Counted from the first letter of the stretch, positions 1,054-47,943 are shown. The stretch: 64,000 bases of DNA from Macrostomum lignano (GCA_002269645.1 NIVC01000199.1:310001-374000), one strand, 5' to 3'. Notes: generated by a model from the sequence alone, not told the origin. A program made the numbers and translations.

Positions 1054-4000
1054 GTTAGTTCAGATTCACTTTTGTTTGGAGTAAACTTGTGGGCTCGCAA
1101 AGATGAGTGGTCAGATGGAACAGAGGAAGAATAGGAAAAGAGTGCAGATGAGAGGTTAACGAGTGCAAAGGAGAGGTTAAAGAGTGCAGATGAGAGGTTA
1201 ACGAGTGCAGCTCTAGGAGAGGTTAACGAGTGCAAAGGAGAGGTTAAAGAGTGCAGAGGAGAGGTTAAAGAGTGCAGATGAGAGGTTAAAGAGTGCAGCT
1301 CTAGGAGAGGTTAACGAGTGCAAAGGAGAGGTTAAAGAGTGCAGAGGAGAGGTTAAAGAGTGCAGAGGAGAGCTTAACGAGTGCAAAGGAGAGGTTAAAG
1401 AGTGCAGATGAGAGGTTAACGAGTGCAAAGGAGAGGTTAAAGAGGGCAGAGGAGAGGTTAAAGAGTGCAGAGGAGAGGTTAAAGAGTGCAGAGGAGAGGT
1501 TAACGAGTGCAGAGGAGAGGTTAAAGAGTGCAGCTCTAGGAGAGGTTAGAGTGCAGAGGAGAAGTTAACAAGTGCAGAGGAGAGGTTAAAGAGTGCAGAG
1601 GAGAGGTTAAAGAGTGCAGAGGAGAGGTTAAAGAGTGCAGAGGAGAGGTTAGAGTTGAGCGGGGTCAGTGCAAGTCCCAGATTGAAATAGCGCCAATTGA
1701 TATTCAATATTTAAATGGTTATAAACAAACTGGCAACCATACAGGTAAGCCTGGAGCAGGAGCTGCTGCTAGAAGCTGACCAGCTGGCCCGCTGCCTGGT
1801 CAGATCAACCGTGACCCGCCTAGCGATGCTGCAGAAGCGGTTCCACGCCGTTCAAGAGCACTTCGCCGATGTTGACGATTTTCGTCGTTGCGTGCCGCCG
1901 AATGTGCATCGGCTGCTGGAGCTGCTGGCCCGCTTCCGGCCTCGGACAGAGTTTAGCATTGAATTTATTAATGAGAGCTTCGGTTGCGGTGGCGCTACTA
2001 ATAGTAATAAGCCTAGCAGTGCCGCTGCTGGTGATAGCGAATTGGTTGGATTGAGCGACGCGGAATCAACTGACTCGGATGAGGATGATGGCCGAGGTGG
2101 CGGAGTTGAAATCACGGAGCTGAATAATTCCAACTGCTTGCCCTACAAAGTGGTGCCGAAAGTCTCTGATGATGAGCCAAGCGAACGGCTTAGCGCACTG
2201 GTCTTTGTTCGAGACTGTTTCACCGCCTACGGACTGTGCAAATTGCTTGAAGAAGTGTGCATCTGGGATCCGGAGTTTTTCTTTGTCAAGCCGGCTTATA
2301 TGTTCTCGCTGGTTACTAAGCCTAAGCAGCAGAGGGTCACGGACTATTTGAGAAAGTTTCGGCAGGTAAACGTTTCTGTAATCTGCAAATTGAAAATGTA
2401 TAGCATCGAATAGCTGGCCTAGTGATGGGGTTGTAGCCTAGTGATGGGGTTGTAGCCTAGTGATGGGGTTGTAGCCTAGTGATGGGGTTGTAGCCTAGTG
2501 ATGGGGTTGTAGCCTAGTGATGGGGTTGTAGCCTAGTGATGGGGTTGTAGCCTAGTGATGGGGTTGTAGCCTAGTGATGGGGTTGTAGCCTAGTGATGGG
2601 GTTGTAGCCTAGTGGAGGGGTTGTAGCCTAGTGATGGGGTTGTAGCCTAGTGATGGGGTTGTAGCCTAGTGATGGGGTTGTAGCCTAGTGATGGGGTTGT
2701 AGCCTAGTGGAGGGGTTGTAGCCTAGTTATGGGGTTGTAGCCTAGTGGAGGGGTTTTAGCCTAGTGATGGGGTTGTAGCCTAGTGATGGGGTTGTAGCCT
2801 AGTGATGGGGTTGTAGCCTAGTCATGGGGTTGTAGCCTAGTGGAGGGGTTGTAGCCTAGTGGAGGGGTTGTAGCCTAGTGATGGGGTTGTAGCCTAGTGA
2901 TGGGGTTGTAGCCTAGTGATGGGGTTGTAGCCTAGTGATGGGGTTGTAGCCTAGTGATGGGGTTGTAGCCTAGTGATGGGGTTGTAGCCTAGTGATGGGG
3001 TTGTAGCCTAGTGATGGGGTTGTAGCCTAGTGATGGGGTTGTAGCCTAATGATGGGGTTGTAACCTAGTCATGGGGTTGTAGCCTAGTGATGGGGTTGTA
3101 GCCTAGTGATGGGGTTGTAGCCTAGTGATGGGGTTGTAGCCTAGTGATGGGGTTGTAGCCTAGTGATGGGGTTGTAGCCTAGTGATGGGGTTGTAGCCTA
3201 GTGATGGGGTTGTAGCCTAGTGATGGGGTTGTAGCCTAGTGATGGGGTTGTAGCCTAGTGATGGGGTTGTAGCCTAGTGATGGGGTTGTAGCCTAGTGAT
3301 GGGGTTGTAGCCTAGTGATGGGGTTGTAGCCTAGTGATGGGGTTGTAGCCTAGTGATGGGGTTGTAGCCTAGTGATGGGGTTGTAGCCTAGTCATGGGGT
3401 TGTAGCCTAGTGATGGGGTTGTAGCCTAGTGGAAGGGGTTGTAGCCTAGTGATGGGGTTGTAGCCTAGTGATGGGGTTGTAGCCTAGTGGAAGGGGTTGT
3501 AGCCTAGTGGAGGGGTTGTAGCCTAGTGGAGGGGTTGTAGCCTAGTGGAGGGGTTGTAGCCTAGTGATGGGGTTGTAGCCTAGTGATGGGGTTGTAGCCT
3601 AGTGATGGGGTTGTAGCCTAGTGGAGGGGTTGTAGCCTAGTGGAGGGGTTGTAGCCTAGTGGAGGGGTTGTAGCCTAGTGATGGGGTTGTAGCCTAGTGA
3701 TGGGGTTGTAGCCTAGTGATGGGGTTGTAGCCTAGTGATGGGGTTGTAGCCTAGTGGAGGGGTTGTAGCCTAGTGATGGAGTTGTAGCCTAGTGATGGGG
3801 TTGTAGCCTAGTGATGGGGTTGTAGCCTAATGATGGGGTTGTAACCTAGTCATGGGGTTGTAGCCTAGTGATGGGGTTGTAGCCTAGTGATGGGGTTGTA
3901 GCCTAGTGATGGGGTTGTAGCCTAGTGGAGGGGTTGTAGCCTAGTGGAGGGGTTGTAGCCTAGTGGAGGGGTTGTAGCCTAGTGGAGGGGTTGTAGCCTA

Positions 4001-7000
4001 GTGGAGGGGTTGTAGCCTAGTGGAGGGGTTGTAGCCTAGTGGAGGGGTTGTAGCCTAGTGGAGGGGTTGTAGCCTAGTGGAGGGGTTGTAGCCTAGTGGA
4101 GGGGTTGTAGCCTAGTGGAGGGGTTGTAGCCTAGTGGAGGGGTTGTAGCCTAGTGATGGGGTTGTAGCCTAGTGATGGGGTTGTAGCCTAGTGGAGGGGT
4201 TGTAGCCTAGTGGAGGGGTTGTAGCCTAGTGATGGGGTTGTAGCCTAGTGGAGGGGTTGTAGCCTAGTGATGGGGTTGTAGCCTAGTGATGGGGTTGTAG
4301 CCTAGTGGAGGGGTTGTAGCCTAGTGGAGGGGTTGTAGCCTAGTGATGGGTTGTAGCCTAGTGATGGGGTTGTAGCCTAGTGATGGGGTTGTAGCCTAGT
4401 GATGGGGTTGTAGCCTAGTGGAGGGGTTGTAGCCTAGTGGAGGGGTTGTAGCCTAGTGATGGGGTTGTAGCCTAGTGATGGGGTTGTAGCCTAGTGGAGG
4501 GGTTGTAGCCTAGTGGAGGGGTTGTAGCCTAGTGAGGGGTTGTAGCCTAGTGGAGGGGTTGTAGCCTAGTGGAGGGGTTGTAGCCTAGTGGAGGGGTTGT
4601 AGCCTAGTGGAGGGGTTGTAGCCTAGTGGAGGGGTTGTAGCCTAGTGATGGGGTTGTAGCCTAGTGATGGGGTTGTAGCCTAGTGGAGGGGTTGTAGCCT
4701 AGTGGAGGGGTTGTAGCCTAGTGATGGGGTTGTAGCCTAGTGATGGGGTTGTAGCCTAGTGATGGGGTTGTAGCCTAGTGATGGGGTTGTAGCCTAGTGA
4801 GGGGTTGTAGCCTAGTGGAGGGGTTGTAGCCTAGTGATGGGGTTGTAGCCTAGTGATGGGGTTGTAGCCTAGTGATGGGGTTGTAGCCTAGTGATGGGGT
4901 TGTAGCCTAGTGATGGGGTTGTAGCCTAGTGGAGGGGTTGTAGCCTAGTGGAGGGGTTGTAGCCTAGTGGAGGGGTTGTAGCCTAGTGATGGGGTTGTAG
5001 CCTAGTGGAGGGGTTGTAGCCTAGTGATGGGGTTGTAGCCTAGTGGAGGGGTTGTAGCCTAGTGGAGGGGTTGTAGCCTAGTGATGGGGTTGTAGCCTAG
5101 TGATGGGGTTGTAGCCTAGTGAGGGGTTGTAGCCTAGTGATGGGGTTGTAGCCTAGTGATGGGGTTGTAGCCTAGTGATGGGGTTGTAGCCTAGTGATGG
5201 GGTTGTAGCCTAGTGATGGGGTTGTAGCCTAGTGATGGGGTTGTAGCCTAGTGATGGGGTTGTAGCCTAGTGATGGGGTTGTAGCCTAGTGAGGGGTTGT
5301 AGCCTAGTGATGGGGTTGTAGCCTAGTGATGGGGTTGTAGCCTAGTGATGGGGTTGTAGCCTAGTGATGGGGTTGTAGCCTAGTGATGGGGTTGTAGCCT
5401 AGTGGAGGGGTTGTAGCCTAGTGATGGGGTTGTAGCCTAGTGGAGGGGTTGTAGCCTAGTGATGGGGTTGTAGCCTAGTGATGGGGTTGTAGCCTAGTGA
5501 TGGGGTTGTAGCCTAGTGATGGGGTTGTAGCCTAGTGATGGGGTTGTAGCCTAGTGAGGGGTTGTAGCCTAGTGATGGGGTTGTAGCCTAGTGATGGGGT
5601 TGTAGCCTAGTGATGGGGTTGTAGCCTAGTGATGGGGTTGTAGCCTAGTGATGGGGTTGTAGCCTAGTGATGGGGTTGTAGCCTAGTGATGGGGTTGTAG
5701 CCTAGTGATGGGGTTGTAGCCTAGTGATGGGGTTGTAGCCTAGTGATGGGGTTGTAGCCTAGTGATGGGGTTGTAGCCTAGTGATGGGGTTGTAGCCTAG
5801 TGATGGGGTTGTAGCCTAGTGATGGGGTTGTAGCCTAGTGATGGGGTTGTAGCCTAGTGATGGGGTTGTAGCCTAGTGATGGGGTTGTAGCCTAGTGATG
5901 GGGTTGTAGCCTAGTGATGGGGTTGTAGCCTAGTGAGGGGTTGTAGCCTAGTGATGGGGTTGTAGCCTAGTGATGGGGTTGTAGCCTAGTGATGGGGTTG
6001 TAGCCTAGTGAGGGGTTGTAGCCTAGTGAGGGGTTGTAGCCTAGTGGAGGGGTTGTAGCCTAGTGATGGGGTTGTAGCCTAGTGATGGGGTTGTAGCCTA
6101 GTGATGGGGTTGTAGCCTAGTGAGGGGTTGTAGCCTAGTGATGGGGTTGTAGCCTAGTGAGGGGTTGTAGCCTAGTGATGGGTTGTAGCCTAGTGATGGG
6201 GTTGTAGCCTAGTGATGGGGTTGTAGCCTAGTGATGGGGTTGTAGCCTAGTGATGGGGTTGTAGCCTAGTGATGGGGTTGTAGCCTAGTGATGGGGTTGT
6301 AGCCTAGTGATGGGGTTGTAGCCTAGTGAGGGGTTGTAGCCTAGTGAGGGGTTGTAGCCTAGTGATGGGGTTGTAGCCTAGTGAGGGGTTGTAGCCTAGT
6401 GATGGGGTTGTAGCCTAGTGATGGGGTTGTAGCCTAGTGATGGGGTTGTAGCCTAGTGAGGGGTTGTAGCCTAGTGGAGGGGTTGTAGCCTAGTGATGGG
6501 GTTGTAGCCTAGTGGAGGGGTTGTAGCCTAGTGGAGGGGTTGTAGCCTAGTGATGGGGTTGTAGCCTAGTGATGGGGTTGTAGCCTAGTGATGGGGTTGT
6601 AGCCTAGTGATGGGGTTGTAGCCTAGTGATGGGGTTGTAGCCTAGTGAGGGGTTGTAGCCTAGTGATGGGGTTGTAGCCTAGTGATGGGGTTGTAGCCTA
6701 GTGAGGGGTTGTAGCCTAGTGAGGGGTTGTAGCCTAGTGATGGGGTTGTAGCCTAGTGATGGGGTTGTAGCCTAGTGATGGGGTTGTAGCCTAGTGATGG
6801 GGTTGTAGCCTAGTGATGGGGTTGTAGCCTAGTGAGGGGTTGTAGCCTAGTGAGGGGTTGTAGCCTAGTGGAGGGGTTGTAGCCTAGTGAGGGGTTGTAG
6901 CCTAGTGGAGGGGTTGTAGCCTAGTGGAGGGGTTGTAGCCTAGTGATGGGGTTGTAGCCTAGTGATGGGGTTGTAGCCTAGTGAGGGGTTGTAGCCTAGT

Positions 7001-10000
7001 GAGGGGTTGTAGCCTAGTGATGGGGTTGTAGCCTAGTGAGGGGTTGTAGCCTAGTGATGGGGTTGTAGCCTAGTGATGGGGTTGTAGCCTAGTGAGGGGT
7101 TGTAGCCTAGTGGAGGGGTTGTAGCCTAGTGATGGGGTTGTAGCCTAGTGATGGGGTTGTAGCCTAGTGATGGGGTTGTAGCCTAGTGATGGGGTTGTAG
7201 CCTAGTGATGGGGTTGTAGCCTAGTGAGGGGTTGTAGCCTAGTGAGGGGTTGTAGCCTAGTGATGGGGTTGTAGCCTAGTGAGGGGTTGTAGCCTAGTGA
7301 TGGGGTTGTAGCCTAGTGAGGGGTTGTAGCCTAGTGAGGGGTTGTAGCCTAGTGAGGGGTTGTAGCCTAGTGAGGGGTTGTAGCCTAGTGGAGGGGTTGT
7401 AGCCTAGTGGAGGGGTTGTAGCCTAGTGATGGGGTTGTAGCCTAGTGATGGGGTTGTAGCCTAGTGATGGGGTTGTAGCCTAGTGAGGGGTTGTAGCCTA
7501 GTGATGGGGTTGTAGCCTAGTGATGGGGTTGTAGCCTAGTGATGGGGTTGTAGCCTAGTGATGGGGTTGTAGCCTAGTGATGGGGTTGTAGCCTAGTGAT
7601 GGGGTTGTAGCCTAGTGATGGGGTTGTAGCCTAGTGATGGGGTTGTAGCCTAGTGATGGGGTTGTAGCCTAGTGATGGGGTTGTAGCCTAGTGATGGGGT
7701 TGTAGCCTAGTGAGGGGTTGTAGCCTAGTGAGGGGTTGTAGCCTAGTGAGGGGTTGTAGCCTAGTGATGGGGTTGTAGCCTAGTGATGGGGTTGTAGCCT
7801 AGTGATGGGGTTGTAGCCTAGTGAGGGGTTGTAGCCTAGTGATGGGGTTGTAGCCTAGTGATGGGGTTGTAGCCTAGTGATGGGGTTGTAGCCTAGTGAT
7901 GGGGTTGTAGCCTAGTGATGGGGTTGTAGCCTAGTGATGGGGTTGTAGCCTAGTGATGGGGTTGTAGCCTAGTGATGGGGTTGTAGCCTAGTGATGGGGT
8001 TGTAGCCTAGTGATGGGGTTGTAGCCTAGTGATGGGGTTGTAGCCTAGTGATGGGGTTGTAGCCTAGTGATGGGGTTGTAGCCTAGTGATGGGGTTGTAG
8101 CCTAGTGATGGGGTTGTAGCCTAGTGATGGGGTTGTAGCCTAGTGATGGGGTTGTAGCCTAGTGATGGGGTTGTAGCCTAGTGATGGGGTTGTAGCCTAG
8201 TGATGGGGTTGTAGCCTAGTGAGGGGTTGTAGCCTAGTGATGGGGTTGTAGCCTAGTGATGGGGTTGTAGCCTAGTGATGGGGTTGTAGCCTAGTGATGG
8301 GGTTGTAGCCTAGTGATGGGGTTGTAGCCTAGTGGAGGGGTTGTAGCCTAGTGGAGGGGTTGTAGCCTAGTGGAGGGGTTGTAGCCTAGTGGAGGGGTTG
8401 TAGCCTAGTGGAGGGGTTGTAGCCTAGTGATGGGGTTGTAGCCTAGTGATGGGGTTGTAGCCTAGTGATGGGGTTGTAGCCTAGTGGAGGGGTTGTAGCC
8501 TAGTGATGGGGTTGTAGCCTAGTGGAGGGGTTGTAGCCTAGTGATGGGGTTGTAGCCTAGTGATGGGGTTGTAGCCTAGTGGAGGGGTTGTAGCCTAGTG
8601 GAGGGGTTGTAGCCTAGTGATGGGGTTGTAGCCTAGTGATGGGGTTGTAGCCTAGTGATGGGGTTGTAGCCTAGTGATGGGGTTGTAGCCTAGTGATGGG
8701 GTTGTAGCCTAGTGGAGGGGTTGTAGCCTAGTGAGGGGTTGTAGCCTAGTGAGGGGTTGTAGCCTAGTGAGGGGTTGTAGCCTAGTGATGGGGTTGTAGC
8801 CTAGTGAGGGGTTGTAGCCTAGTGGAGGGGTTGTAGCCTAGTGGAGGGGTTGTAGCCTAGTGGAGGGGTTGTAGCCTAGTGGAGGGGTTGTAGCCTAGTG
8901 AGGGGTTGTAGCCTAGTGATGGGGTTGTAGCCTAGTGGATGGGGTTGTAGCCTAGTGGAGGGGTTGTAGCCTAGTGGAGGGGTTGTAGCCTAGTGATGGG
9001 GTTGTAGCCTAGTGATGGGGTTGTAGCCTAGTGATGGGGTTGTAGCCTAGTGATGGGGTTGTAGCCTAGTGATGGGGTTGTAGCCTAGTGATGGGGTTGT
9101 AGCCTAGTGATGGGGTTGTAGCCTAGTGATGGGGTTGTAGCCTAGTGATGGGGTTGTAGCCTAGTGATGGGGTTGTAGCCTAGTGATGGGGTTGTAGCCT
9201 AGTGAGGGGTTGTAGCCTAGTGGAGGGGTTGTAGCCTAGTGATGGGGTTGTAGCCTAGTGATGGGGTTGTAGCCTAGTGGAGGGGTTGTAGCCTAGTGAT
9301 GGGGTTGTAGCCTAGTGGAGGGGTTGTAGCCTAGTGATGGGGTTGTAGCCTAGTGATGGGGTTGTAGCCTAGTGATGGGGTTGTAGCCTAGTGATGGGGT
9401 TGTAGCCTAGTGATGGGGTTGTAGCCTAGTGATGGGGTTGTAGCCTAGTGATGGGGTTGTAGCCTAGTGATGGGGTTGTAGCCTAGTGATGGGGTTGTAG
9501 CCTAGTGATGGGGTTGTAGCCTAGTGATGGGGTTGTAGCCTAGTGATGGGGTTGTAGCCTAGTGATGGGGTTGTAGCCTAGTGATGGGGTTGTAGCCTAG
9601 TGATGGGGTTGTAGCCTAGTGATGGGGTTGTAGCCTAGTGATGGGGTTGTAGCCTAGTGATGGGGTTGTAGCCTAGTGATGGGGTTGTAGCCTAGTGATG
9701 GGGTTGTAGCCTAGTGATGGGGTTGTAGCCTAGTGATGGGGTTGTAGCCTAGTGATGGGGTTGTAGCCTAGTGATGGGGTTGTAGCCTAGTGATGGGGTT
9801 GTAGCCTAGTGATGGGGTTGTAGCCTAGTGATGGGGTTGTAGCCTAGTGATGGGGTTGTAGCCTAGTGATGGGGTTGTAGCCTAGTGATGGGGTTGTAGC
9901 CTAGTGATGGGGTTGTAGCCTAGTGATGGGGTTGTAGCCTAGTGATGGGGTTGTAGCCTAGTGATGGGGTTGTAGCCTAGTGATGGGGTTGTAGCCTAGT

Positions 10001-13000
10001 GATGGGGTTGTAGCCTAGTGATGGGGTTGTAGCCTAGTGATGGGGTTGTAGCCTAGTGATGGGGTTGTAGCCTAGTGATGGGGTTGTAGCCTAGTGATGG
10101 GGTTGTAGCCTAGTGATGGGGTTGTAGCCTAGTGATGGGGTTGTAGCCTAGTGATGGGGTTGTAGCCTAGTGATGGGGTTGTAGCCTAGTGATGGGGTTG
10201 TAGCCTAGTGATGGGGTTGTAGCCTAGTGATGGGGTTGTAGCCTAGTGATGGGGTTGTAGCCTAGTGATGGGGTTGTAGCCTAGTGAGGGGTTGTAGCCT
10301 AGTGAGGGGTTGTAGCCTAGTGATGGGGTTGTAGCCTAGTGATGGGGTTGTAGCCTAGTGATGGGGTTGTAGCCTAGTGATGGGGTTGTAGCCTAGTGAT
10401 GGGGTTGTAGCCTAGTGAGGGGTTGTAGCCTAGTGATGGGGTTGTAGCCTAGTGATGGGGTTGTAGCCTAGTGATGGGGTTGTAGCCTAGTGATGGGGTT
10501 GTAGCCTAGTGATGGGGTTGTAGCCTAGTGATGGGGTTGTAGCCTAGTGATGGGGTTGTAGCCTAGTGATGGGGTTGTAGCCTAGTGATGGGGTTGTAGC
10601 CTAGTGATGGGGTTGTAGCCTAGTGATGGGGTTGTAGCCTAGTGAGGGGTTGTAGCCTAGTGATGGGGTTGTAGCCTAGTGAGGGGTTGTAGCCTAGTGA
10701 GGGGTTGTAGCCTAGTGAGGGGTTGTAGCCTAGTGGAGGGGTTGTAGCCTAGTGAGGGGTTGTAGCCTAGTGAGGGGTTGTAGCCTAGTGGAGGGGTTGT
10801 AGCCTAGTGAGGGGTTGTAGCCTAGTGATGGGGTTGTAGCCTAGTGATGGGGTTGTAGCCTAGTGATGGGGTTGTAGCCTAGTGATGGGGTTGTAGCCTA
10901 GTGGAGGGGTTGTAGCCTAGTGATGGGGTTGTAGCCTAGTGATGGGGTTGTAGCCTAGTGGAGGGGTTGTAGCCTAGTGATGGGGTTGTAGCCTAGTGAT
11001 GGGGTTGTAGCCTAGTGATGGGGTTGTAGCCTAGTGATGGGGTTGTAGCCTAGTGATGGGGTTGTAGCCTAGTGATGGGGTTGTAGCCTAGTGATGGGGT
11101 TGTAGCCTAGTGAGGGGTTGTAGCCTAGTGGAGGGGTTGTAGCCTAGTGGAGGGGTTGTAGCCTAGTGGAGGGGTTGTAGCCTAGTGGAGGGGTTGTAGC
11201 CTAGTGAGGGGTTGTAGCCTAGTGAGGGGTTGTAGCCTAGTGATGGGGTTGTAGCCTAGTGAGGGGTTGTAGCCTAGTGAGGGGTTGTAGCCTAGTGAGG
11301 GGTTGTAGCCTAGTGATGGGGTTGTAGCCTAGTGAGGGGTTGTAGCCTAGTGATGGGGTTGTAGCCTAGTGATGGGGTTGTAGCCTAGTGAGGGGTTGTA
11401 GCCTAGTGATGGGGTTGTAGCCTAGTGATGGGGTTGTAGCCTAGTGATGGGGTTGTAGCCTAGTGATGGGGTTGTAGCCTAGTGAGGGGTTGTAGCCTAG
11501 TGGAGGGGTTGTAGCCTAGTGAGGGGTTGTAGCCTAGTGAGGGGTTGTAGCCTAGTGATGGGGTTGTAGCCTAGTGGAGGGGTTGTAGCCTAGTGAGGGG
11601 TTGTAGCCTAGTGGAGGGGTTGTAGCCTAGTGGAGGGGTTGTAGCCTAGTGGAGGGGTTGTAGCCTAGTGGAGGGGTTGTAGCCTAGTGGGGGTTGTAGC
11701 CTAGTGAGGGGTTGTAGCCTAGTGATGGGGTTGTAGCCTAGTGATGGGGTTGTAGCCTAGTGATGGGGTTGTAGCCTAGTGATGGGGTTGTAGCCTAGTG
11801 ATGGGGTTGTAGCCTAGTGATGGGGTTGTAGCCTAGTGATGGGGTTGTAGCCTAGTGATGGGGTTGTAGCCTAGTGATGGGGTTGTAGCCTAGTGATGGG
11901 GTTGTAGCCTAGTGATGGGGTTGTAGCCTAGTGATGGGGTTGTAGCCTAGTGATGGGGTTGTAGCCTAGTGATGGGGTTGTAGCCTAGTGGGGGTTGTAG
12001 CCTAGTGGAGGGGTTGTAGCCTAGTGAGGGGTTGTAGCCTAGTGAGGGGTTGTAGCCTAGTGATGGGGTTGTAGCCTAGTGAGGGGTTGTAGCCTAGTGA
12101 TGGGGTTGTAGCCTAGTGAGGGGTTGTAGCCTAGTGATGGGGTTGTAGCCTAGTGATGGGGTTGTAGCCTAGTGATGGGGTTGTAGCCTAGTGATGGGGT
12201 TGTAGCCTAGTGATGGGGTTGTAGCCTAGTGATGGGGTTGTAGCCTAGTGATGGGGTTGTAGCCTAGTGATGGGGTTGTAGCCTAGTGATGGGGTTGTAG
12301 CCTAGTGATGGGGTTGTAGCCTAGTGATGGGGTTGTAGCCTAGTGATGGGGTTGTAGCCTAGTGATGGGGTTGTAGCCTAGTGATGGGGTTGTAGCCTAG
12401 TGATGGGGTTGTAGCCTAGTGATGGGGTTGTAGCCTAGTGATGGGGTTGTAGCCTAGTGATGGGGTTGTAGCCTAGTGATGGGGTTGTAGCCTAGTGATG
12501 GGGTTGTAGCCTAGTGATGGGGTTGTAGCCTAGTGATGGGGTTGTAGCCTAGTGATGGGGTTGTAGCCTAGTGATGGGGTTGTAGCCTAGTGATGGGGTT
12601 GTAGCCTAGTGATGGGGTTGTAGCCTAGTGATGGGGTTGTAGCCTAGTGATGGGGTTGTAGCCTAGTGATGGGGTTGTAGCCTAGTGATGGGGTTGTAGC
12701 CTAGTGATGGGGTTGTAGCCTAGTGATGGGGTTGTAGCCTAGTGATGGGGTTGTAGCCTAGTGATGGGGTTGTAGCCTAGTGATGGGGTTGTAGCCTAGT
12801 GATGGGGTTGTAGCCTAGTGATGGGGTTGTAGCCTAGTGATGGGGTTGTAGCCTAGTGATGGGGTTGTAGCCTAGTGATGGGGTTGTAGCCTAGTGATGG
12901 GGTTGTAGCCTAGTGATGGGGTTGTAGCCTAGTGATGGGGTTGTAGCCTAGTGATGGGGTTGTAGCCTAGTGATGGGGTTGTAGCCTAGTGATGGGGTTG

Positions 13001-16000
13001 TAGCCTAGTGATGGGGTTGTAGCCTAGTGGAGGGGTTGTAGCCTAGTGATGGGGTTGTAGCCTAGTGGAGGGGTTGTAGCCTAGTGGAGGGGTTGTAGCC
13101 TAGTGGAGGGGTTGTAGCCTAGTGATGGGGTTGTAGCCTAGTGATGGGGTTGTAGCCTAGTGATGGGGTTGTAGCCTAGTGATGGGGTTGTAGCCTAGTG
13201 ATGGGGTTGTAGCCTAGTGATGGGGTTGTAGCCTAGTGATGGGGTTGTAGCCTAGTGATGGGGTTGTAGCCTAGTGATGGGGTTGTAGCCTAGTGATGGG
13301 GTTGTAGCCTAGTGATGGGGTTGTAGCCTAGTGATGGGGTTGTAGCCTAGTGATGGGGTTGTAGCCTAGTGATGGGGTTGTAGCCTAGTGATGGGGTTGT
13401 AGCCTAGTGATGGGGTTGTAGCCTAGTGAGGGGTTGTAGCCTAGTGATGGGGTTGTAGCCTAGTGATGGGGTTGTAGCCTAGTGAGGGGTTGTAGCCTAG
13501 TGATGGGGTTGTAGCCTAGTGGAGGGGTTGTAGCCTAGTGGAGGGGTTGTAGCCTAGTGGAGGGGTTGTAGCCTAGTGGAGGGGTTGTAGCCTAGTGGAG
13601 GGGTTGTAGCCTAGTGATGGGGTTGTAGCCTAGTGATGGGGTTGTAGCCTAGTGATGGGGTTGTAGCCTAGTGATGGGGTTGTAGCCTAGTGAGGGGTTG
13701 TAGCCTAGTGAGGGTTGTAGCCTAGTGAGGGGTTGTAGCCTAGTGATGGGGTTGTAGCCTAGTGATGGGGTTGTAGCCTAGTGGAGGGGTTGTAGCCTAG
13801 TGATGGGGTTGTAGCCTAGTGATGGGGTTGTAGCCTAGTGATGGGGTTGTAGCCTAGTGATGGGGTTGTAGCCTAGTGATGGGGTTGTAGCCTAGTGATG
13901 GGGTTGTAGCCTAGTGGAGGGGTTGTAGCCTAGTGGAGGGGTTGTAGCCTAGTGGAGGGGTTGTAGCCTAGTGATGGGGTTGTAGCCTAGTGGAGGGGTT
14001 GTAGCCTAGTGATGGGGTTGTAGCCTAGTGGAGGGGTTGTAGCCTAGTGGAGGGGTTGTAGCCTAGTGGAGGGGTTGTAGCCTAGTGGAGGGGTTGTAGC
14101 CTAGTGGAGGGGTTGTAGCCTAGTGAGGGGTTGTAGCCTAGTGATGGGGTTGTAGCCTAGTGATGGGGTTGTAGCCTAGTGGAGGGGTTGTAGCCTAGTG
14201 GATGGGGTTGTAGCCTAGTGATGGGGTTGTAGCCTAGTGATGGGGTTGTAGCCTAGTGGAGGGGTTGTAGCCTAGTGATGGGTTGTAGCCTAGTGATGGG
14301 GTTGTAGCCTAGTGATGGGGTTGTAGCCTAGTGATGGGGTTGTAGCCTAGTGATGGGGTTGTAGCCTAGTGATGGGGTTGTAGCCTAGTGGAGGGGTTGT
14401 AGCCTAGTGGAGGGGTTGTAGCCTAGTGGAGGGGTTGTAGCCTAGTGATGGGGTTGTAGCCTAGTGGAGGGGTTGTAGCCTAGTGATGGGGTTGTAGCCT
14501 AGTGATGGGGTTGTAGCCTAGTGATGGGGTTGTAGCCTAGTGATGGGGTTGTAGCCTAGTGATGGGGTTGTAGCCTAGTGATGGGGTTGTAGCCTAGTGA
14601 TGGGGTTGTAGCCTAGTGATGGGGTTGTAGCCTAGTGGAAGGGGTTGTAGCCTAGTGGAGGGGTTGTAGCCTAGTGGATGGGGTTGTAGCCTAGTGATGG
14701 GGTTGTAGCCTAGTGATGGGGTTGTAGCCTAGTGATGGGGTTGTAGCCTAGTGATGGGGTTGTAGCCTAGTGATGGGGTTGTAGCCTAGTGATGGGGTTG
14801 TAGCCTAGTGGAGGGGTTGTAGCCTAGTGATGGGGTTGTAGCCTAGTGATGGGGTTGTAGCCTAGTGATGGGGTTGTAGCCTAGTGATGGGGTTGTAGCC
14901 TAGTGATGGGGTTGTAGCCTAGTGATGGGGTTGTAGCCTAGTGATGGGGTTGTAGCCTAGTGATGGGGTTGTAGCCTAGTGATGGGGTTGTAGCCTAGTG
15001 ATGGGGTTGTAGCCTAGTGATGGGTTGTAGCCTAGTGAGGGGTTGTAGCCTAGTGGAGGGGTTGTAGCCTAGTGATGGGGTTGTAGCCTAGTGGAGGGGT
15101 TGTAGCCTAGTGATGGGGTTGTAGCCTAGTGATGGGGTTGTAGCCCAGTGGTTAAAGCGTCGGGCTCACGACTGAAAGGTCGGGGGCTCGATTCCCGATC
15201 CCACGAGAACAGTTTGTGTCCTTGAGTAATACACTTTAAACTCTGCATTTCTTCAGTTCACCCAGCTGTAAAATGGGTGCCAGCATTAGCTGGAGTAACT
15301 GAGGCTGTGTGTGGCGACCCCCCAGTCCTTGGACTGAACAGCCGTACGCAGCCCTCAGATGCACCGCGCAATAGCTGCGGCTGAGCTGTCGGCTGCACAT
15401 CTGCCCATTAGGGCAGGTGTAATTAATAATAATTTTTATTTTTATATTGAAAACAGTCGTTAGTAAAAACGTTAATGCATATGGAAAATGAGTCATATAG
15501 GTCAGCACCCGGTAATTTAGCCCAGGTAGGATGGATACGAGATAGGTCAGCACCCGGTAAGAATCAGCAGTTACTAATTCATCACACCCGTAATTTCAGG
15601 GCGAGGCCAACCTGCTAGTGGTGACAGAAGCAATGGAGAACCTCGGCGACCTGCCCAAATGCAATCTGGTAGTCCGGTTCAATCCGCCGCGCACTTTCAA
15701 TTCCTATTTTCATTCTAAGAATCGCGCTCGGTCTTTCAATTCAACCTACGCCACCTTAGTGACGCCTTGTGACGCAGGTTTCCAAGAAAGTCACGCCGCG
15801 TTCAAAGCTACGGAGGAGCTGCTGCTGCGCAGCGGTGCAGCCTCCGACGAATCTCGGCGACGATTGGCTCGCGGAGATGATTCGCCAATTGCTGACGCCG
15901 ATGACGAGTCCTCCGAGTCGGAGACATTCGCGCCATTCGGTCTGTCGGGTCCTTCGGTGACTGCGGATGCGGCGATACCCGTGGTGAATCGCTACTGCGC

Positions 16001-19000
16001 CCGGCTGCCGTCAGATGTTTTTGCCAGCCTTGTGCCGCTGTGGCAAATTGAGAAGTCGGCTGATGTCGATGCTTATAGGTTTGTGTAGCTGCACTGGGGG
16101 GGGGGTCGCCACACACAGCCTCAATTACCCCAGCTAATGCTGGCACCCATTTTACAGCTGGGTGAACTGAAGCAATGCAGAGTTATAGTATCTTGCTCAA
16201 GAACACAAATGTTCCAGTGGGATCGGGAATCGAACCCTCGACCTTTCAGTCGGGAGTCCAACTCTCTACCCACTGGGCTACAACCCAAGGACTACTCAAT
16301 AGAAGGACTGAAAACCTCGTTTCTTGGAGAATTATAGGAGGCAGGTTCTTCCGAAAAAATACACTACGGAGATAGGAAGTTTTTATTTTTTCGCAAAGTT
16401 TTTACCTGAATGTCCCCTGTGTGTTTACCTGGATGTCACATGTGTTTTTACCTGGATGTCACCTGTGTTTTTACCTGGATGTCACCTGTGTGTTTACCTG
16501 GATGTCACATGTGTTTTTACCTGGATGTCACCTGTGTTTTTACCTGGATGTCCCCTGTGTTTTTACCTGGATGTCACATTTGTTTTTACCTGGATGTCAC
16601 ATGTGTTTTTACCTGAATGTCCCCTGTGTTTTTACCTGGATGTCACCTGTGTTTTTACCTGGATGTCCCCTGTGCTTTTACCTGGATGTCCCCTGTGTTT
16701 TTACCTGAATGTCCCCTGTGTTTTTACCTGGATGTCCCCTGTGTTTTTACCTAGATGTCCCCTGTGTTTTTACCTGGATGTCCCCTGTGTTTTTACCTGG
16801 ATGTCCCCTGTGTGTTTACCTGATGTCCCCTGTGTGTTTACCTGATGTCCCCTGTGTTTTTACCTAGATGTCCCCTGTGTTTTTACCTGGATGTCCCCTG
16901 TGTTTTTACCTGGATGTCCCCTGTGTGTTTACCTGATGTCCCCTGTGTGTTTACCTGATGTCCCCTGTGTTTTTACCTAGATGTCCCCTGTGTTTTTACC
17001 TGGATGTCCCCTGTGTTTTTACCTGGATGTCCCCTGTGTGTTTACCTGATGTCCCCTGTGTGTTTACCTGATGTCCCCTGTGTTTTTACCTAGATGTCCC
17101 CTGTGTTTTTACCTGGATGTCCCCTGTGTTTTTACCTGGATGTCACCTGTGTTTTTACCTGGATGTCCCCTGTGTTTTTACCTGGATGTCACCTGTGTTT
17201 TTACCTAGATGTCACCTGTGTTTTTACCTGGATGTCACATGTGTTTTTACCTGGATGTCACATGTGTTTTTACCTGGATGTCCCCTGTGTTTTTACCTGG
17301 ATGTCACATGTGTTTTTACCTGGATGTCACCTGTGTTTTTACCTGGATGTCACCTGTGTTTTTACCTGGATGTCACATGTGTTTTACCTGGATGTCACCT
17401 GTGTTTTTACCTGGATGTCACCTGTGTTTTTACCTGGATGTCACATGTGTTTTACCTGGATGTCACCTGTGTTTTTACCTGGATGTCACCTGTGTTTTTA
17501 CCTGGATGTCACATGTGTTTTACCTGGATGTTCCCTGTGTTTTATCTTTATGTCACATGTGCTTTTTCTGGATCTCCGTAAGCTGTTTCCTGAAAATGAT
17601 CTGCGTTATTTTTCCGTGTGCATGTAGATTGTTAAATATTGTTAATACATAATTGCTTTTGTTTCCTGGAAGTCCCTAGTTTTCATTAGCCAACCAGCAT
17701 GTATTAAAATGTTATTAGAACCACCATAAAGCTTCCCGGATGCTAAACTGCATTGCCACTCTAACCAATCCATTTGCTTGTCAGATGCCGGCTCTGCCTA
17801 CCCATGAATTCGCCCTGTCGCCGTTCAGTCATCGGCGCCTGGTGCCCGACAGTCCAGTCGGCAAAGTGCAGCGCCGCGCTGGCTTGCGTCAGAGAGTTGC
17901 ACTCAGCTGGTCAGCTGGACTCAAACCTGAAGCCGTACAGCAAAGAGGAGCTGGTCAATCTTGCGCACAAGTCTATCATTCAATCGCCAATGTCAAAACT
18001 TAGTAATGGCGATGGGGTTATTGGCAATAGCAACACGGGTATTGGTGGTTCGAAACGGCGTCAGGTGTATCAGAAACAGCTGGCTGCTGAGCTGACCGCT
18101 AACCTGCCTGAGCCAGACCTGCCGTGCAGACTGTACCGCATTCGACTGCGACCGGAGCACGTCTGGGCGATGCCTTCGGCTGCCGTGGCGGCTGCGACTG
18201 ACCCGGAACAGCTGATGACCACTTCTAGGTGTCGATCATCGTTTGGACTGATTCTGCGAGATCCTCTGCCTGATTGTCTGCCGCTGTTCTGCTTGTATCC
18301 GCGGCAGGGGGAGGTAAGTTGAGATGATTCACGCTTACTGATTGGAATAAGGTGGTGCTTAGTGAATAGTGAAGAATCAGGAGCGGCGCTTAATGATGAT
18401 AGAAATGAGGTGGTGCTTAGTGAAGAATCAGGAGTGGTGCTTAATAAAAGAAATGAGGTGGTGCTTAGTGAAGAATCAGGAGCGGCGCTTAATGAAAGAA
18501 ATGAAGTGATGCTTAGTGAAGAATCAGGAGTGGTGCTTAATAAAAGAAATGAGGTGGTGCTTAGTGAATAATCAGAAGTGGTGCTTAATGATAGAAATGA
18601 AGTGATGCTTAGTGAAGAATCAGGAGTGGTGCTTAATGATAGACATGAAGTGATGCTTAGTGAAGAATCAGGAGCAGTGCTTAATGAAAGAAATGAGGTG
18701 GTGCTTAGTGAAGAATCAGGAGCGGTGATTAATGAAAGAAATGAGGTGGTGCTTAGTGAAGAATCAGGAGCGGTGCTTAATGAAAGAAATGAAGTGATGC
18801 TTAGTGAAGAATCAGGAGCGGCGCTTAATGATGATAGAAATGAGGTGGTGCTTAGTGAAGAATCAGGAGCGGTGCTTAATGAAAGAAATGAAGTGGTTCT
18901 TAGCGAATTTCTGCCTTCTCTCATTTTCCACAGACCGATGTAGACTTTCCTCTGATTGCTGACTCCCTGACCCTGTCAGCTGAGCAGCTGAGCCTGCTCA

Positions 19001-22000
19001 AACGGTTCCATCGAGTTCTGTTTCATCGAGTGCTCAGACTGGAGAAAGAAGCCAGCATGACGCCTGACTTTGATGAGGCTCCGTTTAAACCTTTGGTGTG
19101 CCTGCTAACCCGGCCGGTTAAGGAAGCTGGAGATGATCAAAATGATGAGGATACTGTTAATGCTGATGATGAAGCTAGCTGGCAGCTGGACTGGGATCTG
19201 GCTGGCCGGGTGGTGGCCTCGGCCGAGTCGCAGTCGGGCGACGCGCCACCGTGCGAAATTCTACCGGAGAAGCCGTTCAAGTTTCGAGTTGAAGACTTCA
19301 ACGATTGCGTCATTGTTCCATCCTATAGGAACTTTGACCAGCCGCAGTTCTACTTTGTTAGTCAGGTATGAGGGCCTGAGTTTTTGTTCTGTGCTTTTGC
19401 TGACACCTCCCTAAAAATCCACCCCAATAGATCCGAACCACCCCAATAATCCGCCCTAAGAATCCGCCCCTCTTAAAAATCCTCCCAAAAAATCCACCCC
19501 TCTCAAGATCCGCCCTAATAATCCAGCCCCTTTGTAAGAATCGCCCTAAGAACCGCCCTTCTCAAATATCCGCCCCGCTCCCCGAAGATCCGCCCTAAGA
19601 ATCCGCCCCCTCCCGAAGATCCGCCCTAAGAATCCACCCCTTGTAAAAATCCTCCCTAAAAATCCGCCTTTCAAAGATCCGCCCTAAAAATCCGCCCCTC
19701 CCAAAGATCCTCTCTAAGAATCCGCCCCTCCTTAAAATCCGCCCTAAGAATCCGCCCCCTCGAAGATTCGCCTTAAAAATCCGCCCTCCCCTAAAATCCG
19801 CCCTAAGAATCTGCCCCCTCCCAAAGATCCTCTTTAAGAATCCGCCCCCTCCCTAAAATCCGCCCTAAGAATCCGCTCCCCTCCCAAAGATCCTTTCTAA
19901 GAATCCGCCCCTCACTAAAAATCTGAACTAAGAATCCGCCCCCTCCCTAAAATCCGCCCTAAGAATCCGCTCCCTCCAAAGATTCGCCTTAAGAATCCGC
20001 CCCCTCCCTAAAATCCGCCCTAAGAATCCGCCCCTCGTAAAAATCCTCCCTAAAATCCGCCTTTCAAAGATCCGCCCTAAAAATCGGCCCCTCTAGTTGA
20101 TAGTAATAGACCTATTTGCTGCAGTATGAGCACGTTCTATTGTCAAAAGTAAAAACACTGGATGACAAGGCATTAATTGATTTATTACAGCCGATATTCA
20201 CCCAATATTTTTCTATTGATGCCCTGACAAATCTCACTGCCAGATTCGCTGGGATCTGAATCCAGCCTCGCCATTTCCAACTAGCGCCTACGACAGCTTT
20301 GAAGAATACTATTTGAAAAAGTATAACATCAGATTGACAACACGAGACCAGCCCTTGTTGGATGTTGAGCAGAGCAGTTCACGTTATAATGTACTGACGC
20401 CAAGGTAGGATTGGGGTGGCTGTTGTTTACTCTTTGATTTTGTTTTTAAGTCCATTGTTTGTCTTACTTTTGTGGTACGCGTTGGTAACGAGATAGAGTG
20501 GTGGGAAAAAGGGAGACGGGAGAAGTGGGCGCAATGAGAAACAAGAGAGGGAGACAGTGGGGGGGGGCAGGAAAGTTAGAAGTAGACGGAAAAGAGCAAG
20601 AGTAAGATAGGAGAGGGAGAGAGGAGAGGGAGACAGTGAGAGAAACGAGATAGCGAACAGGAAAGAGAGAGACACGAGAGGGAGACAGAGACAGGAGACT
20701 GGGAGATATAGAGGGAGACAGAGACAGGAGACTGGGAGATATAGAGGGAGACAGAGACAGGAGACTGGGAGATATAGAGGGAGACAGAGACAGGAGACTG
20801 GGAGATATAGAGGTAGACAGAAAGGGAGACAGGGGAAGAAAGAGGTAGGCAGAGAGGGAGACATGGGAAAAAAGAGATAGGCAGAGAGGGAGACAGGGGA
20901 AGAAAGAGATAGGCAGAGAGGGAGACAGGGGAAGAAAGAGATAGGCAGAGAGGGAGACAGGGGAAGAAAGAGATAGGCAGAGAGGGAGACAGGGGAAGAA
21001 AGAGATAGGCAGAGAGGGAGACAGGGGAAGAAAGAAGTAGGCAGAGAGGGAGACAAAGGAAGAAAGAGGTAGGCAGAGAGGGAGACAGGGGGTAGACAAA
21101 GTTAAAAGAGGATTCAAACAGTGCATTAAATATTTTTTTAGATTTCTAGACACAGATGGCCGGCCTCTGGGCACCCGGATCAAGCAGCAGCAGCAGCAGC
21201 AACATCCAGTGCAGCAGCAGCCAACTCTCCGCTGCACAAAAGACGAACAGCAGAAGCAGTTATTCATTCCCGAGCTGTGCTATCGCCATATTGTCCCAGC
21301 CTCTGTGTGGCGACAAGCCTGCTGTCTACCCTCCGCTCTCTACCGGCTGAACCACCTGCTCCTGGCAGAATCTCTCCGTCATCAGATTTCCCAGTCTACT
21401 GGAGTCGGCATCGATGCTTTAAATACAATTTCATCTGGCGAGAAGTTGGCCTATTGTGCATTGATTAATTCATCATCAGTTGCCGCCCAGCAGCAGGGTC
21501 AGGCTACCGCTGACGACAAAAACGCCAAATCGGCGGCACCTGGTGGCGACGCGGATTTCGGAGTGTTCCAATGCAACAGCGCCGACAATGACGAGGATCC
21601 GTTGCTAGGCGAAGCTGGCGATGGTGAAGATGCTGAGTCTACGGACAGCTTTGAAGAGATGGTGACATTTTTTCCTAGCGTACAACTGGCTGTAAGCTTG
21701 TTGCCGAACTCTGCAGACCTGCTGCAGTGCCTCACCGCGTCTAATGCTGGCGATCTCATGAACTTGGAGCGCCTGGAGACGGTGGGTAGCGCTTGCAGGG
21801 GTGAGGGGAGGAATGAGAGGCAGGGAGAGGGAAGAGGGGCAGGGAGAGGGAAGAGTGGCAGGGAGAGGGAAGAGAGGCAGGGAGAGGGAAGAGTGGCAGG
21901 GAGAGGGAAGAGAGGCAGGGAGAGGGAAGAGAGGCAGGGAGAGGGAAGAGTGGCAGGGAGAGGGAAGAGGGGCAGGGAGAGGGAAGAGAGGCAGGGAGAG

Positions 22001-25000
22001 GGAAGAGAGGCAGGGAGAGGGAAGAGTGGCAGGGAGAGGGAAGAGAGGCAGGGAGAGGGAAGAGGGGCAGGGAGAGGGAAGAGGGGCAGGGAGAGAGAAG
22101 GGAAGAGAGGCAGGGAGAGAGAAGGGAAGAGAGGCAGGGAGAGAGAAGGGAAGAGAGGCAGGGAGAGAGAAGGGAAGAGAGGCAGGGAGAGAGAATACAG
22201 GCAAGGGGCAGGGAGAGAGAATACAGGCAAGGGGCAGGGAGAGAGAATACAGGCAAGGGGCAGGGAGAGAGAATACAGGCAAGGGGCAGGGAGAGGGAAG
22301 AGAGGCAGGGAGACAGAAGGGAAGAGAGGCAGGGAGAGGGAAGAGTGGCAGGGAGAGGGAAGAGAGGCAGGGAGACAGAAGGAAAGAGAGGCAGGGAGAG
22401 AGAATACAGACAAGGGGCAGGGAGAGGGTTAGAGAGACCTGGAGAGTGGGATTTTAGAGGCAGTTGCTGTGTGCACCCTGGCGCACTTTGAGCGACATTG
22501 TCACACAACCGGCGAGAGGCATTGCTGCCCATTACGCCGACTCCCCTGAGCAGGCACACAAGCGCGCGGATACGTACGCAGTCATACGCACAGGCACACA
22601 CTCACACAGGAGTGTACAGCGGCCCTAACTATATTTATTGTTAGACATGTACACTTCACTGTGCCTTGGGGGTTGGGCCTCAAAGCTCGAGCAGAGCCAA
22701 GCCGAGATTGCAATTCAGCCCCACGTTCCCCTGGTAGAGAGTGATAGCTGAAGTCACACACAAAAAGCCCAGATGGATCTATCACTCCGATTGGCCCTCA
22801 GGTCGGTGATTCGCTACTAAAATTCGCCGTGACAGTCAGCCTGTACTGTACAAATCCCGGTCTGCACGAGGGCGGCCTGACTCAGCTGCGCAGCCGGCAG
22901 GTGAGCAATTCGCACCTGTACTTGTGCGCGGCGGCCAAAGGCTTAGGCGAACTGATTGTGGCCAACAAATTCGAGCCCAGAGAGAACTGGCTGCCTCCCG
23001 GATTGGTGCTCAAGCATCAGCAGCAGCAAGCCAGTAAGATTGCCGATTCAAAACCGGCTGAGTCGCCAGCGGCGGAGGCTGGCGCTTCCACTTCTCCGTC
23101 AAATTCTCCAGGCGGACAAGCGCCGCAGAAGCGCAACAAGAAACGGAGCGGCGCTAGAAATCGAGGCAAAGGAAAATCTGCTGGCAGCAGAGGGGGTGGT
23201 GAGTAACTCGGATTTTGGTAGGTCCTGAGTTCGAATCTGCGATTTTTTAACCCCAGCAGAGGGGGTGGTGAGTAACTCGGATTTTGGTAGGTCCTGAGTT
23301 CGAATCTGCGATATTTTGACCTCGCAGAGGGTGTGGTGAGTACTCGGATTTTAGAAGGTCCTGGGTTCGAATCTGCGATTTTTTAACCCCAGCAGAGGGA
23401 GTGGTGAGTAACTCGGAGTTTGGTAGGTCCTGAGTTCGAATCTGCGTTTTTTACCCCAACAGAGGGGGTGGTGAGTACTCGGATTTTAGAAGGTCCTGAG
23501 TTCGAATCTGCGATATTTTGACCTCGCAGAGGGTGTGGTGAGTACTCGGATTTTAGAAGGTCCTGGGTTCGAATCTGCGATTTTTTAGTTTAGGCTTAGT
23601 TTTAATAAGTCACTATTTAACTACCTCGTAGATCCTAAGTTCGAACTACGATGTAGTTATCTAAATTGAAGTCTTTTGATACAAAAAACAAACATCTGTC
23701 TTTTTTACCCTCTAAGTCGTGAGTTCGAATCTTATGTCGATCAAGTTCTGTTATGCCGAAGCCCTGGATTCCAAATTTGTTCTCTTCCCATCAGGTCAGC
23801 TCAGCGGCAGCAGGCAGCAGCAGCAGAGGCTGCAGGGTGCCGGCCCGGCCTCTTCTTCAGCTGCGTCATTGTCTGGCATCCCTGGCGCCAGCGCCAATTG
23901 CACTTTCCTGCAGATGGAGCAGAGCCTGACTGACAAGTGCCTGGCTGACAGCGTTGAGGCTATTGTTGGCTGCTACTTGGTGCGCTGCAATGAACAGGTC
24001 AGAGTTGGCACAGGATGTTGGTACAGATAGACTGGTAGTCATACTGAATACTGGTAAAGACACTGGTAGACAAATATGTAAATTCAACAGGTAGACATGT
24101 AACAGGTAGATAAGGTAGATAAGTGAACAGTAGAACAGTAAAACTACGTAAGACATTACAGGTAGGTCGTAGGACATTACGTAGATGTAACAGTAGAGGC
24201 GTAGATACGGTAGGCAGATGGGTAGATGCAGTAGGCAGACAGGTAGATATAGTAGGCAGACAGGTAGATGCAGTAGGCAGACAGGTAGATACAGTGGGCA
24301 GGCAGGTAGAGATACAGTAGGCAGACAGGTAGAGATACAGTAGACACATAGGTAGATACAGTAGGCAGATAGGTAGATACAGTAGGCAGACAGGTAGAGA
24401 TACAGTAGTCAGACAGGTAGATACAGTAGGCAGATAGGTAGATACAGTAGGCAGACAGGTAGAGATACAGTAGGCAGACAGGTAGATACAGTAGTAGACA
24501 GACAGGTATATACAGTAGGCAGACAAGTGGATACAGTAGGCAGACAGGTAGAGATACAGTAGGCAGGCAGGTAGATACAGTAGGCAGGCAGGTAGATACA
24601 GTAGGCAGATAGGTAGATACAGTAGGCAGACAGGTAGATACAGTAGGCAGACAGGTATATACAGTAGGCAGACAAGTGGATACAGTAGGCAGACAGGTAG
24701 AGATACAGTAGGCAGGCAGGTAGATACAGTAGGCAGGCAGGTAGATACAGTAGGCAGACAGGTAGATACAGTAGGCAGACAGGTAGATACAGTAGGCAGA
24801 CAGGTATATACAGTAGGCAGACAAGTGGATACAGTAGGCAGACAGGTAGAGATACAGTAGGCAGGCAGGTAGATACAGTAGGCAGGCAGGTAGATACAGT
24901 AGGCAGATAGGTAGATACAGTAGGCAGACAGGTAGATACAGTAGGCAGACAGGTAGAGATACAGTAGGCAGGCAGGTAGATACAGTAGGCAGGCAGACAG

Positions 25001-34188: not shown

Positions 34189-34261
34189 CTGCATGGGGGT
34201 GATTGACAGTTGCTTAATACTAAATATACATGTACCTGTAGCAGGGGAGTGTGGGGCCATT

Positions 34262-47622: not shown

Positions 47623-47943
47623 ATAATAATAATAATAATTGATTACACCTGCCCTAATGGGCAGATGTGCAACCGACAGCTCAGCCGCAGCTATTGCGCG
47701 GCGCATCTGAAGGCTGCGTACGGCTGTTCAGTCCAAGGACTGGGGGTCGCCACACAGCCTCAATTACCCCAGCTAATGCTGGCACCCATTTTACAGCTGG
47801 GTGAACTGAAACAATGCAGAGTTAAGTGTCTCTTGCTCAAGGACACAAATTGTTCCAGTGGGATCGGGAATCGAACCCCCGACCTTTCAGTCGTGAGTCC
47901 GACGCTCTGACCACTAGGCTGCAACCCCCTCTAGGCTACAACA
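47623..47943 (-). mobile_element. Same SINE, copy 3 (full length, (ATT)n tail, doubled head)
   Basis: Reverse complement of copy 1, with perfect B box GGGTTCGATTCCC; head reads GTTGTAGCCTAGAGGGG-GTTGCAGCCTAGTGG. Confidence 0.9.

Follow-up and report, generated by a model that had tools for sequence, protein, structure and literature searches.

Tandem repeats can arise from parts of short interspersed elements (SINEs), and this route has been systematically documented only in squamates, where SINE-derived satellites (sSat) were surveyed in 56 genomes (Vassetzky, Kosushkin and Ryskov, 2023, Mob DNA; PMC10702118). An sSat locus is laid out as a tandem array of a SINE part, followed by one longer unit that reaches the SINE terminus. 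The units measure 67-215 nt and mostly correspond to box B, to the body or to parts derived from a long interspersed element (LINE). Arrays contain up to ~1000-1200 units, are more homogeneous when longer and carry locus-specific subvariants (PMC10702118). Here, we describe an array of related layout in a stretch of 64,000 nucleotides of Macrostomum lignano (GCA_002269645.1 NIVC01000199.1:310001-374000; hereafter the window, with positions counted from its first nucleotide). Within an intron of a Dicer gene, hundreds of copies of a 19-bp unit run without interruption into a tRNA-derived SINE whose 5' head supplies the repeated motif. We consider it likely that this array is a neutral minisatellite that grew in place after duplication of the SINE head, within a region unusually prone to repeats.

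As in sSat, the window array is made up of a SINE part and of a longer terminal unit that extends in phase to the SINE terminus, and it is more homogeneous (97%) than the dispersed SINE copies are among themselves (89-90%). Unlike in sSat, the unit is only 19 bp long and contains nothing of the SINE but nt 1-17 of the head, that is, the A box. The array is known at one locus, which is intronic rather than subtelomeric. Moreover, the host is not a squamate, as indicated by a homologue search with the window Dicer, which returned Dicers only, with a best identity of 64%. The homologues carried no taxonomic signal, and two open frames of the window had no exact protein counterpart on record; the Dicer itself is of metazoan type.

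Other SINE-related tandem repeats offer further points of comparison. SINE-derived minisatellites have long been known in mammals, and those listed in a review include Alu-derived minisatellites (Jurka and Gentles, 2006) and a B1-derived unstable variable number tandem repeat of the mouse (Bois et al., 1998), along with the work of Ahmed and Liang (2012) (PMC9659126). At the Dicer locus, as in these minisatellites, a short SINE segment appears to have been duplicated and expanded in situ, the rest of the SINE staying as a flank. The Alu and B1 minisatellites, usually far shorter, originate in motifs of 7SL-derived SINEs that are A-rich or internal. In the window, by contrast, the seed is the very beginning of a tRNA-derived head, and the array reaches 12.7 kb. 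In amphibians, tRNA-related tandem families of RNA polymerase III (Pol III) type have been described, namely PolIII/TAN in newt, OAX/satellite 1 in Xenopus, Rana/polIII and Hy/polIII. Their units, of ~200-750 nt, contain the whole tRNA-like promoter, some are transcribed in vitro, and they have no known parent SINE (PMC10702118). The window array resembles them in being a tandem repeat with tRNA-like sequence, and differs in that its unit is a promoter fragment and that the parent SINE is still attached. Finally, a survey of bivalves reports whole-SINE tandems in introns and states that partial-SINE arrays were left unscreened (PMC11481361). The window array is a large case of a known tandem-repeat origin, not a new principle. 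What sets it apart is its size, its place inside Dicer, a host that is not a squamate and a very short unit with the A box only.

Tandem Repeats Finder delimits the array at 2417-15150, with a period of 19, 674.4 copies, 97% matches and 1% indels, and the head-unit pattern gives 674 matches, against 0.01 expected from shuffled sequences. When units are read from their GGGG start, the commonest one is GGGGTTGTAGCCTAGTGAT (453 units), followed by GGGGTTGTAGCCTAGTGGA (121-122 units) and by an 18-bp form, GGGGTTGTAGCCTAGTGA (76 units). The 22 others are rare variants of 17-20 bp. Each unit is composed of nt 1-17 of the SINE head (GGGGTTGTAGCCTAGTG, which includes the A box) and of a linker of 0-3 nt that varies along the array (none, A, AT, GA, GAT or GAA), a dimer of the unit being GTTGTAGCCTAGTGRNGGGGTTGTAGCC. 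The array is G/T-rich on the Dicer sense strand, with 43% G and GGGG once per 19 nt, and as a coding sequence it has stops in every frame. Its last 19-bp unit ends at the very border of the SINE, and the motif goes on from 15134 as GGGGTTGTAGCCCAGTGGTTAAAGCGTCGGGCTCACGACTGAAAGGTCGGGGGCTCGATTCCC. An initial annotation of the window had quoted this sequence and had described the array as running unbroken into the SINE, which proves to be the case, with 674 units in phase. It had placed the whole at 2417-15433: the start is confirmed, while the SINE tail reaches ~15447. The terminal head reads GCCCAG where every array unit reads GCCTAG, a deviation from all array units that is typical of edge units.

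The sequence supports the identification of the element attached to the array as a tRNA-derived SINE. Indeed, positions 1-71 of the Rfam tRNA model RF00005 align to 15134-15203 at 20.6 bits, and the same model aligns over its full length to the head of SINE copy 3 (47928-47859, minus strand) at 20.1 bits. Both scores lie below the gathering score of 29, as expected of a decayed tRNA relative, and ARAGORN calls no tRNA. Rfam matches to 'Plastid-ycf2', antisense to the heads, were disregarded as a side effect of the tRNA-like sequence. In copy 1, the A box (TAGCCCAGTGG, 15141-15151) and the B box (GGCTCGATTCC, 15185-15195) are 33 bp apart. This B box, the single one on the plus strand, is one base off the consensus GGTTCGANNCC (T to C at the third base); copies 2 and 3 keep the consensus, with GGTTCGATTCC. 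The array unit agrees with the SINE head at 17 of 17 bases (16 of 17 when compared with copy 1's own head) and corresponds to tRNA positions 1-17 of the full-length model match, covering the acceptor arm and the D arm/A-box region. Thus, the end-to-end alignment of RF00005 and the in-phase intact copy support the earlier proposal that the array is the amplified 5' head of a tRNA-derived SINE.

Downstream of its head, copy 1 has a CORE-like body and then an A/T-rich (AAT/ATT)n tail, in which runs of T5 occur at 15433 and 15439. The tail is common to copies 1 and 3, being written (ATT)n in the latter. Against the CORE of mammalian MIR, the body gives a local alignment of ~95 nt with a score of 71, versus 20.7+/-3.1 (maximum 37) for shuffles, the MIR consensus used being one from outside curated libraries. 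A CORE-SINE superfamily (MIR-like) was reportedly described by Gilbert and Labuda in 1999. The window SINE seems to share its organisation, in that the tRNA-like head precedes a central domain alignable with the CORE of MIR (...CTTGAGCAAG..ACTTAAC...TCAGTT...CTGTAAAATGGG); its (AAT/ATT)n tail is a difference. The window SINE is probably a CORE-SINE, which, given this reference, is a lead rather than a database assignment.

By BLAST, the element has three non-coding copies in the window, one on the plus and two on the minus strand (Table 1). They measure ~190-314 bp, below the ~600 bp that bound tRNA-derived SINEs. The number of head units differs strongly between them, with 674 in copy 1, one in copy 2 and ~1.8-2 in copy 3. 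Copy 2 begins ~20 bp beyond the splice donor of the downstream Dicer exon. In copy 3, an extra 14-nt, 5'-truncated head unit (GTTGTAGCCTAGAG, 47942-47929) stands directly upstream of the copy's own head; this agrees with the single head at 16286 and the two heads at 47943 recorded initially. No target-site duplication of copy 3 was found and no LINE was seen in the 64-kb window. Beyond the window, the head pattern matched at least 120 stretches in metagenomes; among the matches listed, none had a SINE body, and they were chance or bacterial tRNA-like sequences. Scans of bacterial and archaeal genome contigs and of viral contigs for the body 22-mer and for the unit dimer were empty, and a protein search baited with the SINE's open antisense frame gave no candidates. 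Near copy 3, a plus-strand open frame of 292 aa (46684-47559) has an N-terminal THAP domain (Pfam, 58.6 bits) and ends ~65 bp from the tail of the SINE.

Table 1. Positions of the array, the SINE copies and the surrounding Dicer features in the window.
Feature	Position	Strand	Description
19-bp array	2417..15133	+	12,717 bp; 674 units of 19 bp (variants 17-20 bp)
SINE copy 1	15134..15447	+	~314 bp; longer terminal unit of the array; tRNA-like head 15134-15203
SINE copy 2	16100..16286	-	single head (GGGTTGTAGCCCAGTGG...); 3'-truncated; 89% identical to copy 1
SINE copy 3	47625..47942	-	full length; 90% identical to copy 1; own head starts at 47928
Dicer intron	2366..15599	+	13,234 bp; phase 0; GT...AG
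Upstream Dicer exon	1715..2365	+	open frame; ends ...LRKFRQ before the GT donor at 2366; 1715 is the start as read
Downstream Dicer exon	15600..16078	+	starts GEANLL after AG; end inferred from GT at 16079

The array and SINE copy 1 are both sense relative to Dicer and together make up 98% of the intron, leaving ~203 bp of other sequence. When the flanking exons are joined (2365|15600), the Pfam Helicase_C match rises from 19.8 bits, under the cut-off, to 30.7 bits, over it, and crosses the junction. Hence, 2366-15599 is a real intron, which splits the helicase-C domain. In the downstream exon, Helicase_C ends and the Dicer dimerisation domain begins, and the plus-strand frames from 15600 to 29233 contain, in this order, Helicase_C, Dicer_dimer, platform, RNase IIIa, RNase IIIb and Dicer_dsRBD. 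The placement of the array within a Dicer intron, already proposed from the sequence, is borne out by these domains and by the match spanning the junction. The helicase of this Dicer may be degenerate, as the single-exon Helicase_C score is under the cut-off. The motif region at 15600-15740 (plus strand) has diverged from the usual helicase-C motif.

The internal pattern of the array bears on how it grew. The three main unit variants are strongly clustered (227 runs, versus 338+/-9 in shuffles), and the first 75 units hold half of the 22 rare variants (Fisher p=4e-6). Both the clustering and the concentration of rare variants at the 5' edge are expected under unequal exchange. In addition, a two-unit variant pair at 3039/3058 recurs 781 bp (41 units) further on, at 3820/3839, and the array edges are more degenerate than its centre. 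Arrays that grow by slippage and unequal exchange usually show such degenerate edges around a homogeneous centre, together with small duplications of several units. Hairpin-driven slippage was rejected as the cause of growth: the array has no hairpin potential and folds worse than shuffles (-2.5 kcal/mol versus -7.1).

From these features we infer the following order of events and growth mechanism. A tRNA-derived SINE, probably of CORE type, would have inserted in sense orientation into a short Dicer intron of a few hundred bp. The first ~17 nt of the SINE, with a couple of linker bases, would then have been duplicated in tandem, a two-unit state that is seen in copy 3. Replication slippage and unequal exchange would have grown this duplication to a homogenised 12.7 kb in a region where short motifs expand very readily, one end of the array remaining continuous with the intact SINE. 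The product would be neutral: it is most likely removed with the intron by splicing, and would play no part in transcription by Pol III or in binding of TFIIIC.

The surroundings of the array fit such a region. The window contains 34 separate tandem arrays, with periods of 4-67 bp, that cover 48% of it. The cover is 35% in the remainder when the 19-mer array is left out, and 73% over the Dicer span. Nearly every intron holds a tandem array, and the other arrays have units with no relation to the SINE. In length the 19-mer array exceeds the next largest one (2.5 kb) fivefold, but in kind it is no different. A 67-bp array of six units (23185-23587, plus strand) begins within the last part of the Dicer RNase IIIa exon, and the exon end and its GTGAGT splice donor are therefore present six times. 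An array made from an exon end and a splice donor indicates that the region amplifies whatever short sequence is available. With unrelated arrays over 48% of the window, the 19-mer array is accounted for equally well by a local tendency to amplify short motifs and by a special SINE 5' end, and the SINE head does not stand out among the motifs amplified. The minisatellite density of the 64-kb region may be the more unusual fact.

The 67-bp array has some features of its own. Each of its units has a B-box-like GAGTTCGAATC followed by T6. As a candidate for a second tRNA-derived array it was ruled out, with no Rfam tRNA match. It could provide alternative splice donors.

The locus presents a transposon fragment turned into a long tandem array that is fully sequenced, with its parent attached and a two-unit intermediate 32 kb away. 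The SINE-to-satellite route thereby gains an animal lineage other than squamates and a far shorter unit, taken from the promoter only. In addition, an essential gene here tolerates the growth of an intron from ~0.2 kb (~0.5 kb with the SINE) to 13.2 kb.

Some observations weigh against growth in situ from a duplicated head. Only three SINE copies are visible, all within the 64 kb. On its left, the array begins in the middle of a unit, next to unrelated sequence, and a search of the left flank for further, degenerate units found none. As a target-site duplication for copy 1 together with the array, only the 8-mer ATTGAAAA is available, at 2389 and 15446, which is at chance level and does not delimit the insertion. 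The length of the array rests on the assembly. In copies 1 and 3 alike, the unit begins exactly at SINE position 1 and ends at ~nt 17; a shared boundary of this kind may indicate a cause that is specific to the family or acts at the RNA level, and not random DNA breakpoints. Head duplication might then be a property of the SINE family, inherited from a master copy with a doubled head or produced by template jumping, when the reverse transcriptase of the partner LINE, on reaching the 5' end of the SINE RNA, returns to a head and adds a few untemplated bases. Many insertions would in that case begin with at least two heads and seed arrays, which is what the 'amplification-prone' 5' end of the initial annotation amounted to. 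Two of the three copies do have extra heads, with nearly the same limits of nt 1 to ~17; their linkers vary as untemplated additions would, and the most upstream unit is 5'-truncated in both. However, only three copies are available, an identical sequence would result from a duplication at the DNA level with breakpoints at -2 and +17, and unrelated motifs have expanded all over the window. Moreover, 674 units are impossible by reverse transcription, so that expansion at the DNA level is required anyway. We regard a family property as possible but rather unlikely, and the claim that the SINE 5' end is prone to amplification, which relies on three copies in a window with 34 arrays, is not supported.

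Two further explanations concern the array itself. An array that came first, at the end of which the SINE inserted by chance, or a coincidental resemblance between unit and head, would be in line with a target-site duplication not having been demonstrated. Such a course is practically negligible in view of the complete match of the unit to the head (with a single mismatch to that of copy 1), the exact 19-bp phase kept at the junction, the correspondence to the first 17 positions of a tRNA-model match that is full length, and the two-unit intermediate displayed by copy 3. The array may also be real with its length, and possibly its fine structure, an artefact of assembly, through over-expansion or collapse. 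Indeed, 12.7 kb of 19-mers at 97% identity are hard to assemble, and the squamate study cautions that such unit numbers depend on assembly quality (PMC10702118). Against this, the variant pattern is non-periodic over the whole array and its longest repeated non-trivial stretch is 13 units; the lack of any repeated block longer than this argues against block duplication by the assembler. The contrast between degenerate edges and centre is a biological signature, and both flanks are unique exons of one gene with a consistent reading frame. An artefact of this kind is improbable in our opinion, and growth in situ from a duplicated SINE head remains the reading that we favour.

The initial annotation had also pointed to hundreds of A boxes upstream of a single B box, with possible consequences for TFIIIC binding. 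When the A-box consensus is taken as TRGCNNAGTGG (the annotation used TRGCNNARYGG), 130 of the 674 units fit it (...AGTGG). Another 536 units read TAGCCTAGTGA (...AGTGA), without the last G, so that the consensus is broken in 80% of the array. No B box (GG[CT]TCGANNCC) occurs in 2417-15133. In yeast, TFIIIC binds the B box with nanomolar and the A box with micromolar affinity, and single-molecule data show that its binding is nearly abolished on DNA with an A box only (PMC11724288). Natural spacings between A and B boxes range from 31 to 93 bp, and the tauA module of TFIIIC partly redistributes to a nearby second A box (PMC11724288). Only three extra A-box-like motifs are found within 93 bp of the single B box, at 52, 71 and 90 bp. 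These three could shift the start site if SINE copy 1 were transcribed; the remaining ~670 units should be invisible to TFIIIC. The absence of a B box from the units and their general departure from the A-box consensus argue against any role of the array in Pol III transcription or TFIIIC binding, and the claim of hundreds of A boxes binding TFIIIC finds no support. The array has no bearing on the mechanism of Pol III promoters unless binding or transcription is shown. In Extra-TFIIIC (ETC) sites and tDNA insulators, Pol III promoter elements likewise stand away from functional Pol III genes. An ETC site is, however, defined by its B box, which the array units lack, so that the comparison does not hold for the very feature that defines these sites.

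Nothing in the sequence suggests a function for the array. A functional array could take several forms: a platform for TFIIIC/condensin or Pol III, a shift of the Pol III start site, G-quadruplexes or R-loops slowing RNA polymerase II (Pol II) in Dicer, or a source of small RNAs resembling tRNA 5' fragments. Some traits would suit them. The units that fit the consensus number 130, the three A-box-like motifs near the B box fall inside the natural range of spacings, tauA being able to redistribute to a second A box (PMC11724288), no TTTT occurs between 2754 and the SINE tail, and the sense strand is rich in G, with its regular GGGG. Other evidence speaks against them: the near absence of TFIIIC binding to A-box-only DNA (PMC11724288), the large majority of units off consensus and the altered third base of the lone B box, and the lack of any G-quadruplex motif with loops of up to 7 nt. 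The array does not base-pair and, since it folds worse than shuffles, is not a source of double-stranded RNA. Finally, dozens of unrelated arrays lie in neighbouring introns, which argues for neutrality. We therefore find a functional array very unlikely. We give equally little credence to the 19-mer being a genome-wide satellite born repeatedly from the SINE 5' end, for instance by template jumping, with a biologically relevant copy in Dicer. The term 'satellite', as first applied here, implies many loci, since satellite DNA in the strict sense forms many long arrays at several places, typically in heterochromatin, and one locus is visible in the window. Were the 19-mer such a satellite, it would be the first SINE-derived one outside squamates with an A-box-only unit. 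The Dicer copy might then serve as a tauA or chromatin platform, act on Pol II as a G-rich brake or give rise to RNAs resembling tRNA 5' fragments, and such RNAs would arise inside the gene of a small-RNA processing enzyme. On the whole, the derivation of the array from the SINE is supported, and the mechanistic and functional extrapolations made from it are not.

Several other repeats and open frames were observed in the window. Arrays of different periods (23, 22 and 16 bp), at 16398-17543 and 38366-38909, have a common core, ACCTGGAT, contained in the units GTTTTTACCTGGATGTCCCCTGT, CTCACCTGGATTCCCAGGATAC and AATTCACCTGGATTCC, and may be related minisatellite families. Two 15-bp minisatellites (60152-60368 and 60556-60783), ~190 bp apart, have units that are reverse complements of each other (CCGGACATTTGCCCT and GAGGGCAAATGTCCG); they form an inverted array pair that resembles a foldback element. 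A (TGAC)n microsatellite of 348 units, 99% pure, extends over 34261-35654, and the minus-strand open frames flanking it resemble cytosolic aconitase/IRP1, as judged by eye from the translations. An interstitial telomere-type repeat, (TTAGGG)14.7, is located at 43975-44060. Finally, two near-identical cysteine-rich open frames of 126-128 aa lie on the minus strand ~540 bp apart (61583-61966 and 62125-62502), and a related third frame is found at 62683-63024, as if an exon or small gene had recently been duplicated in tandem.

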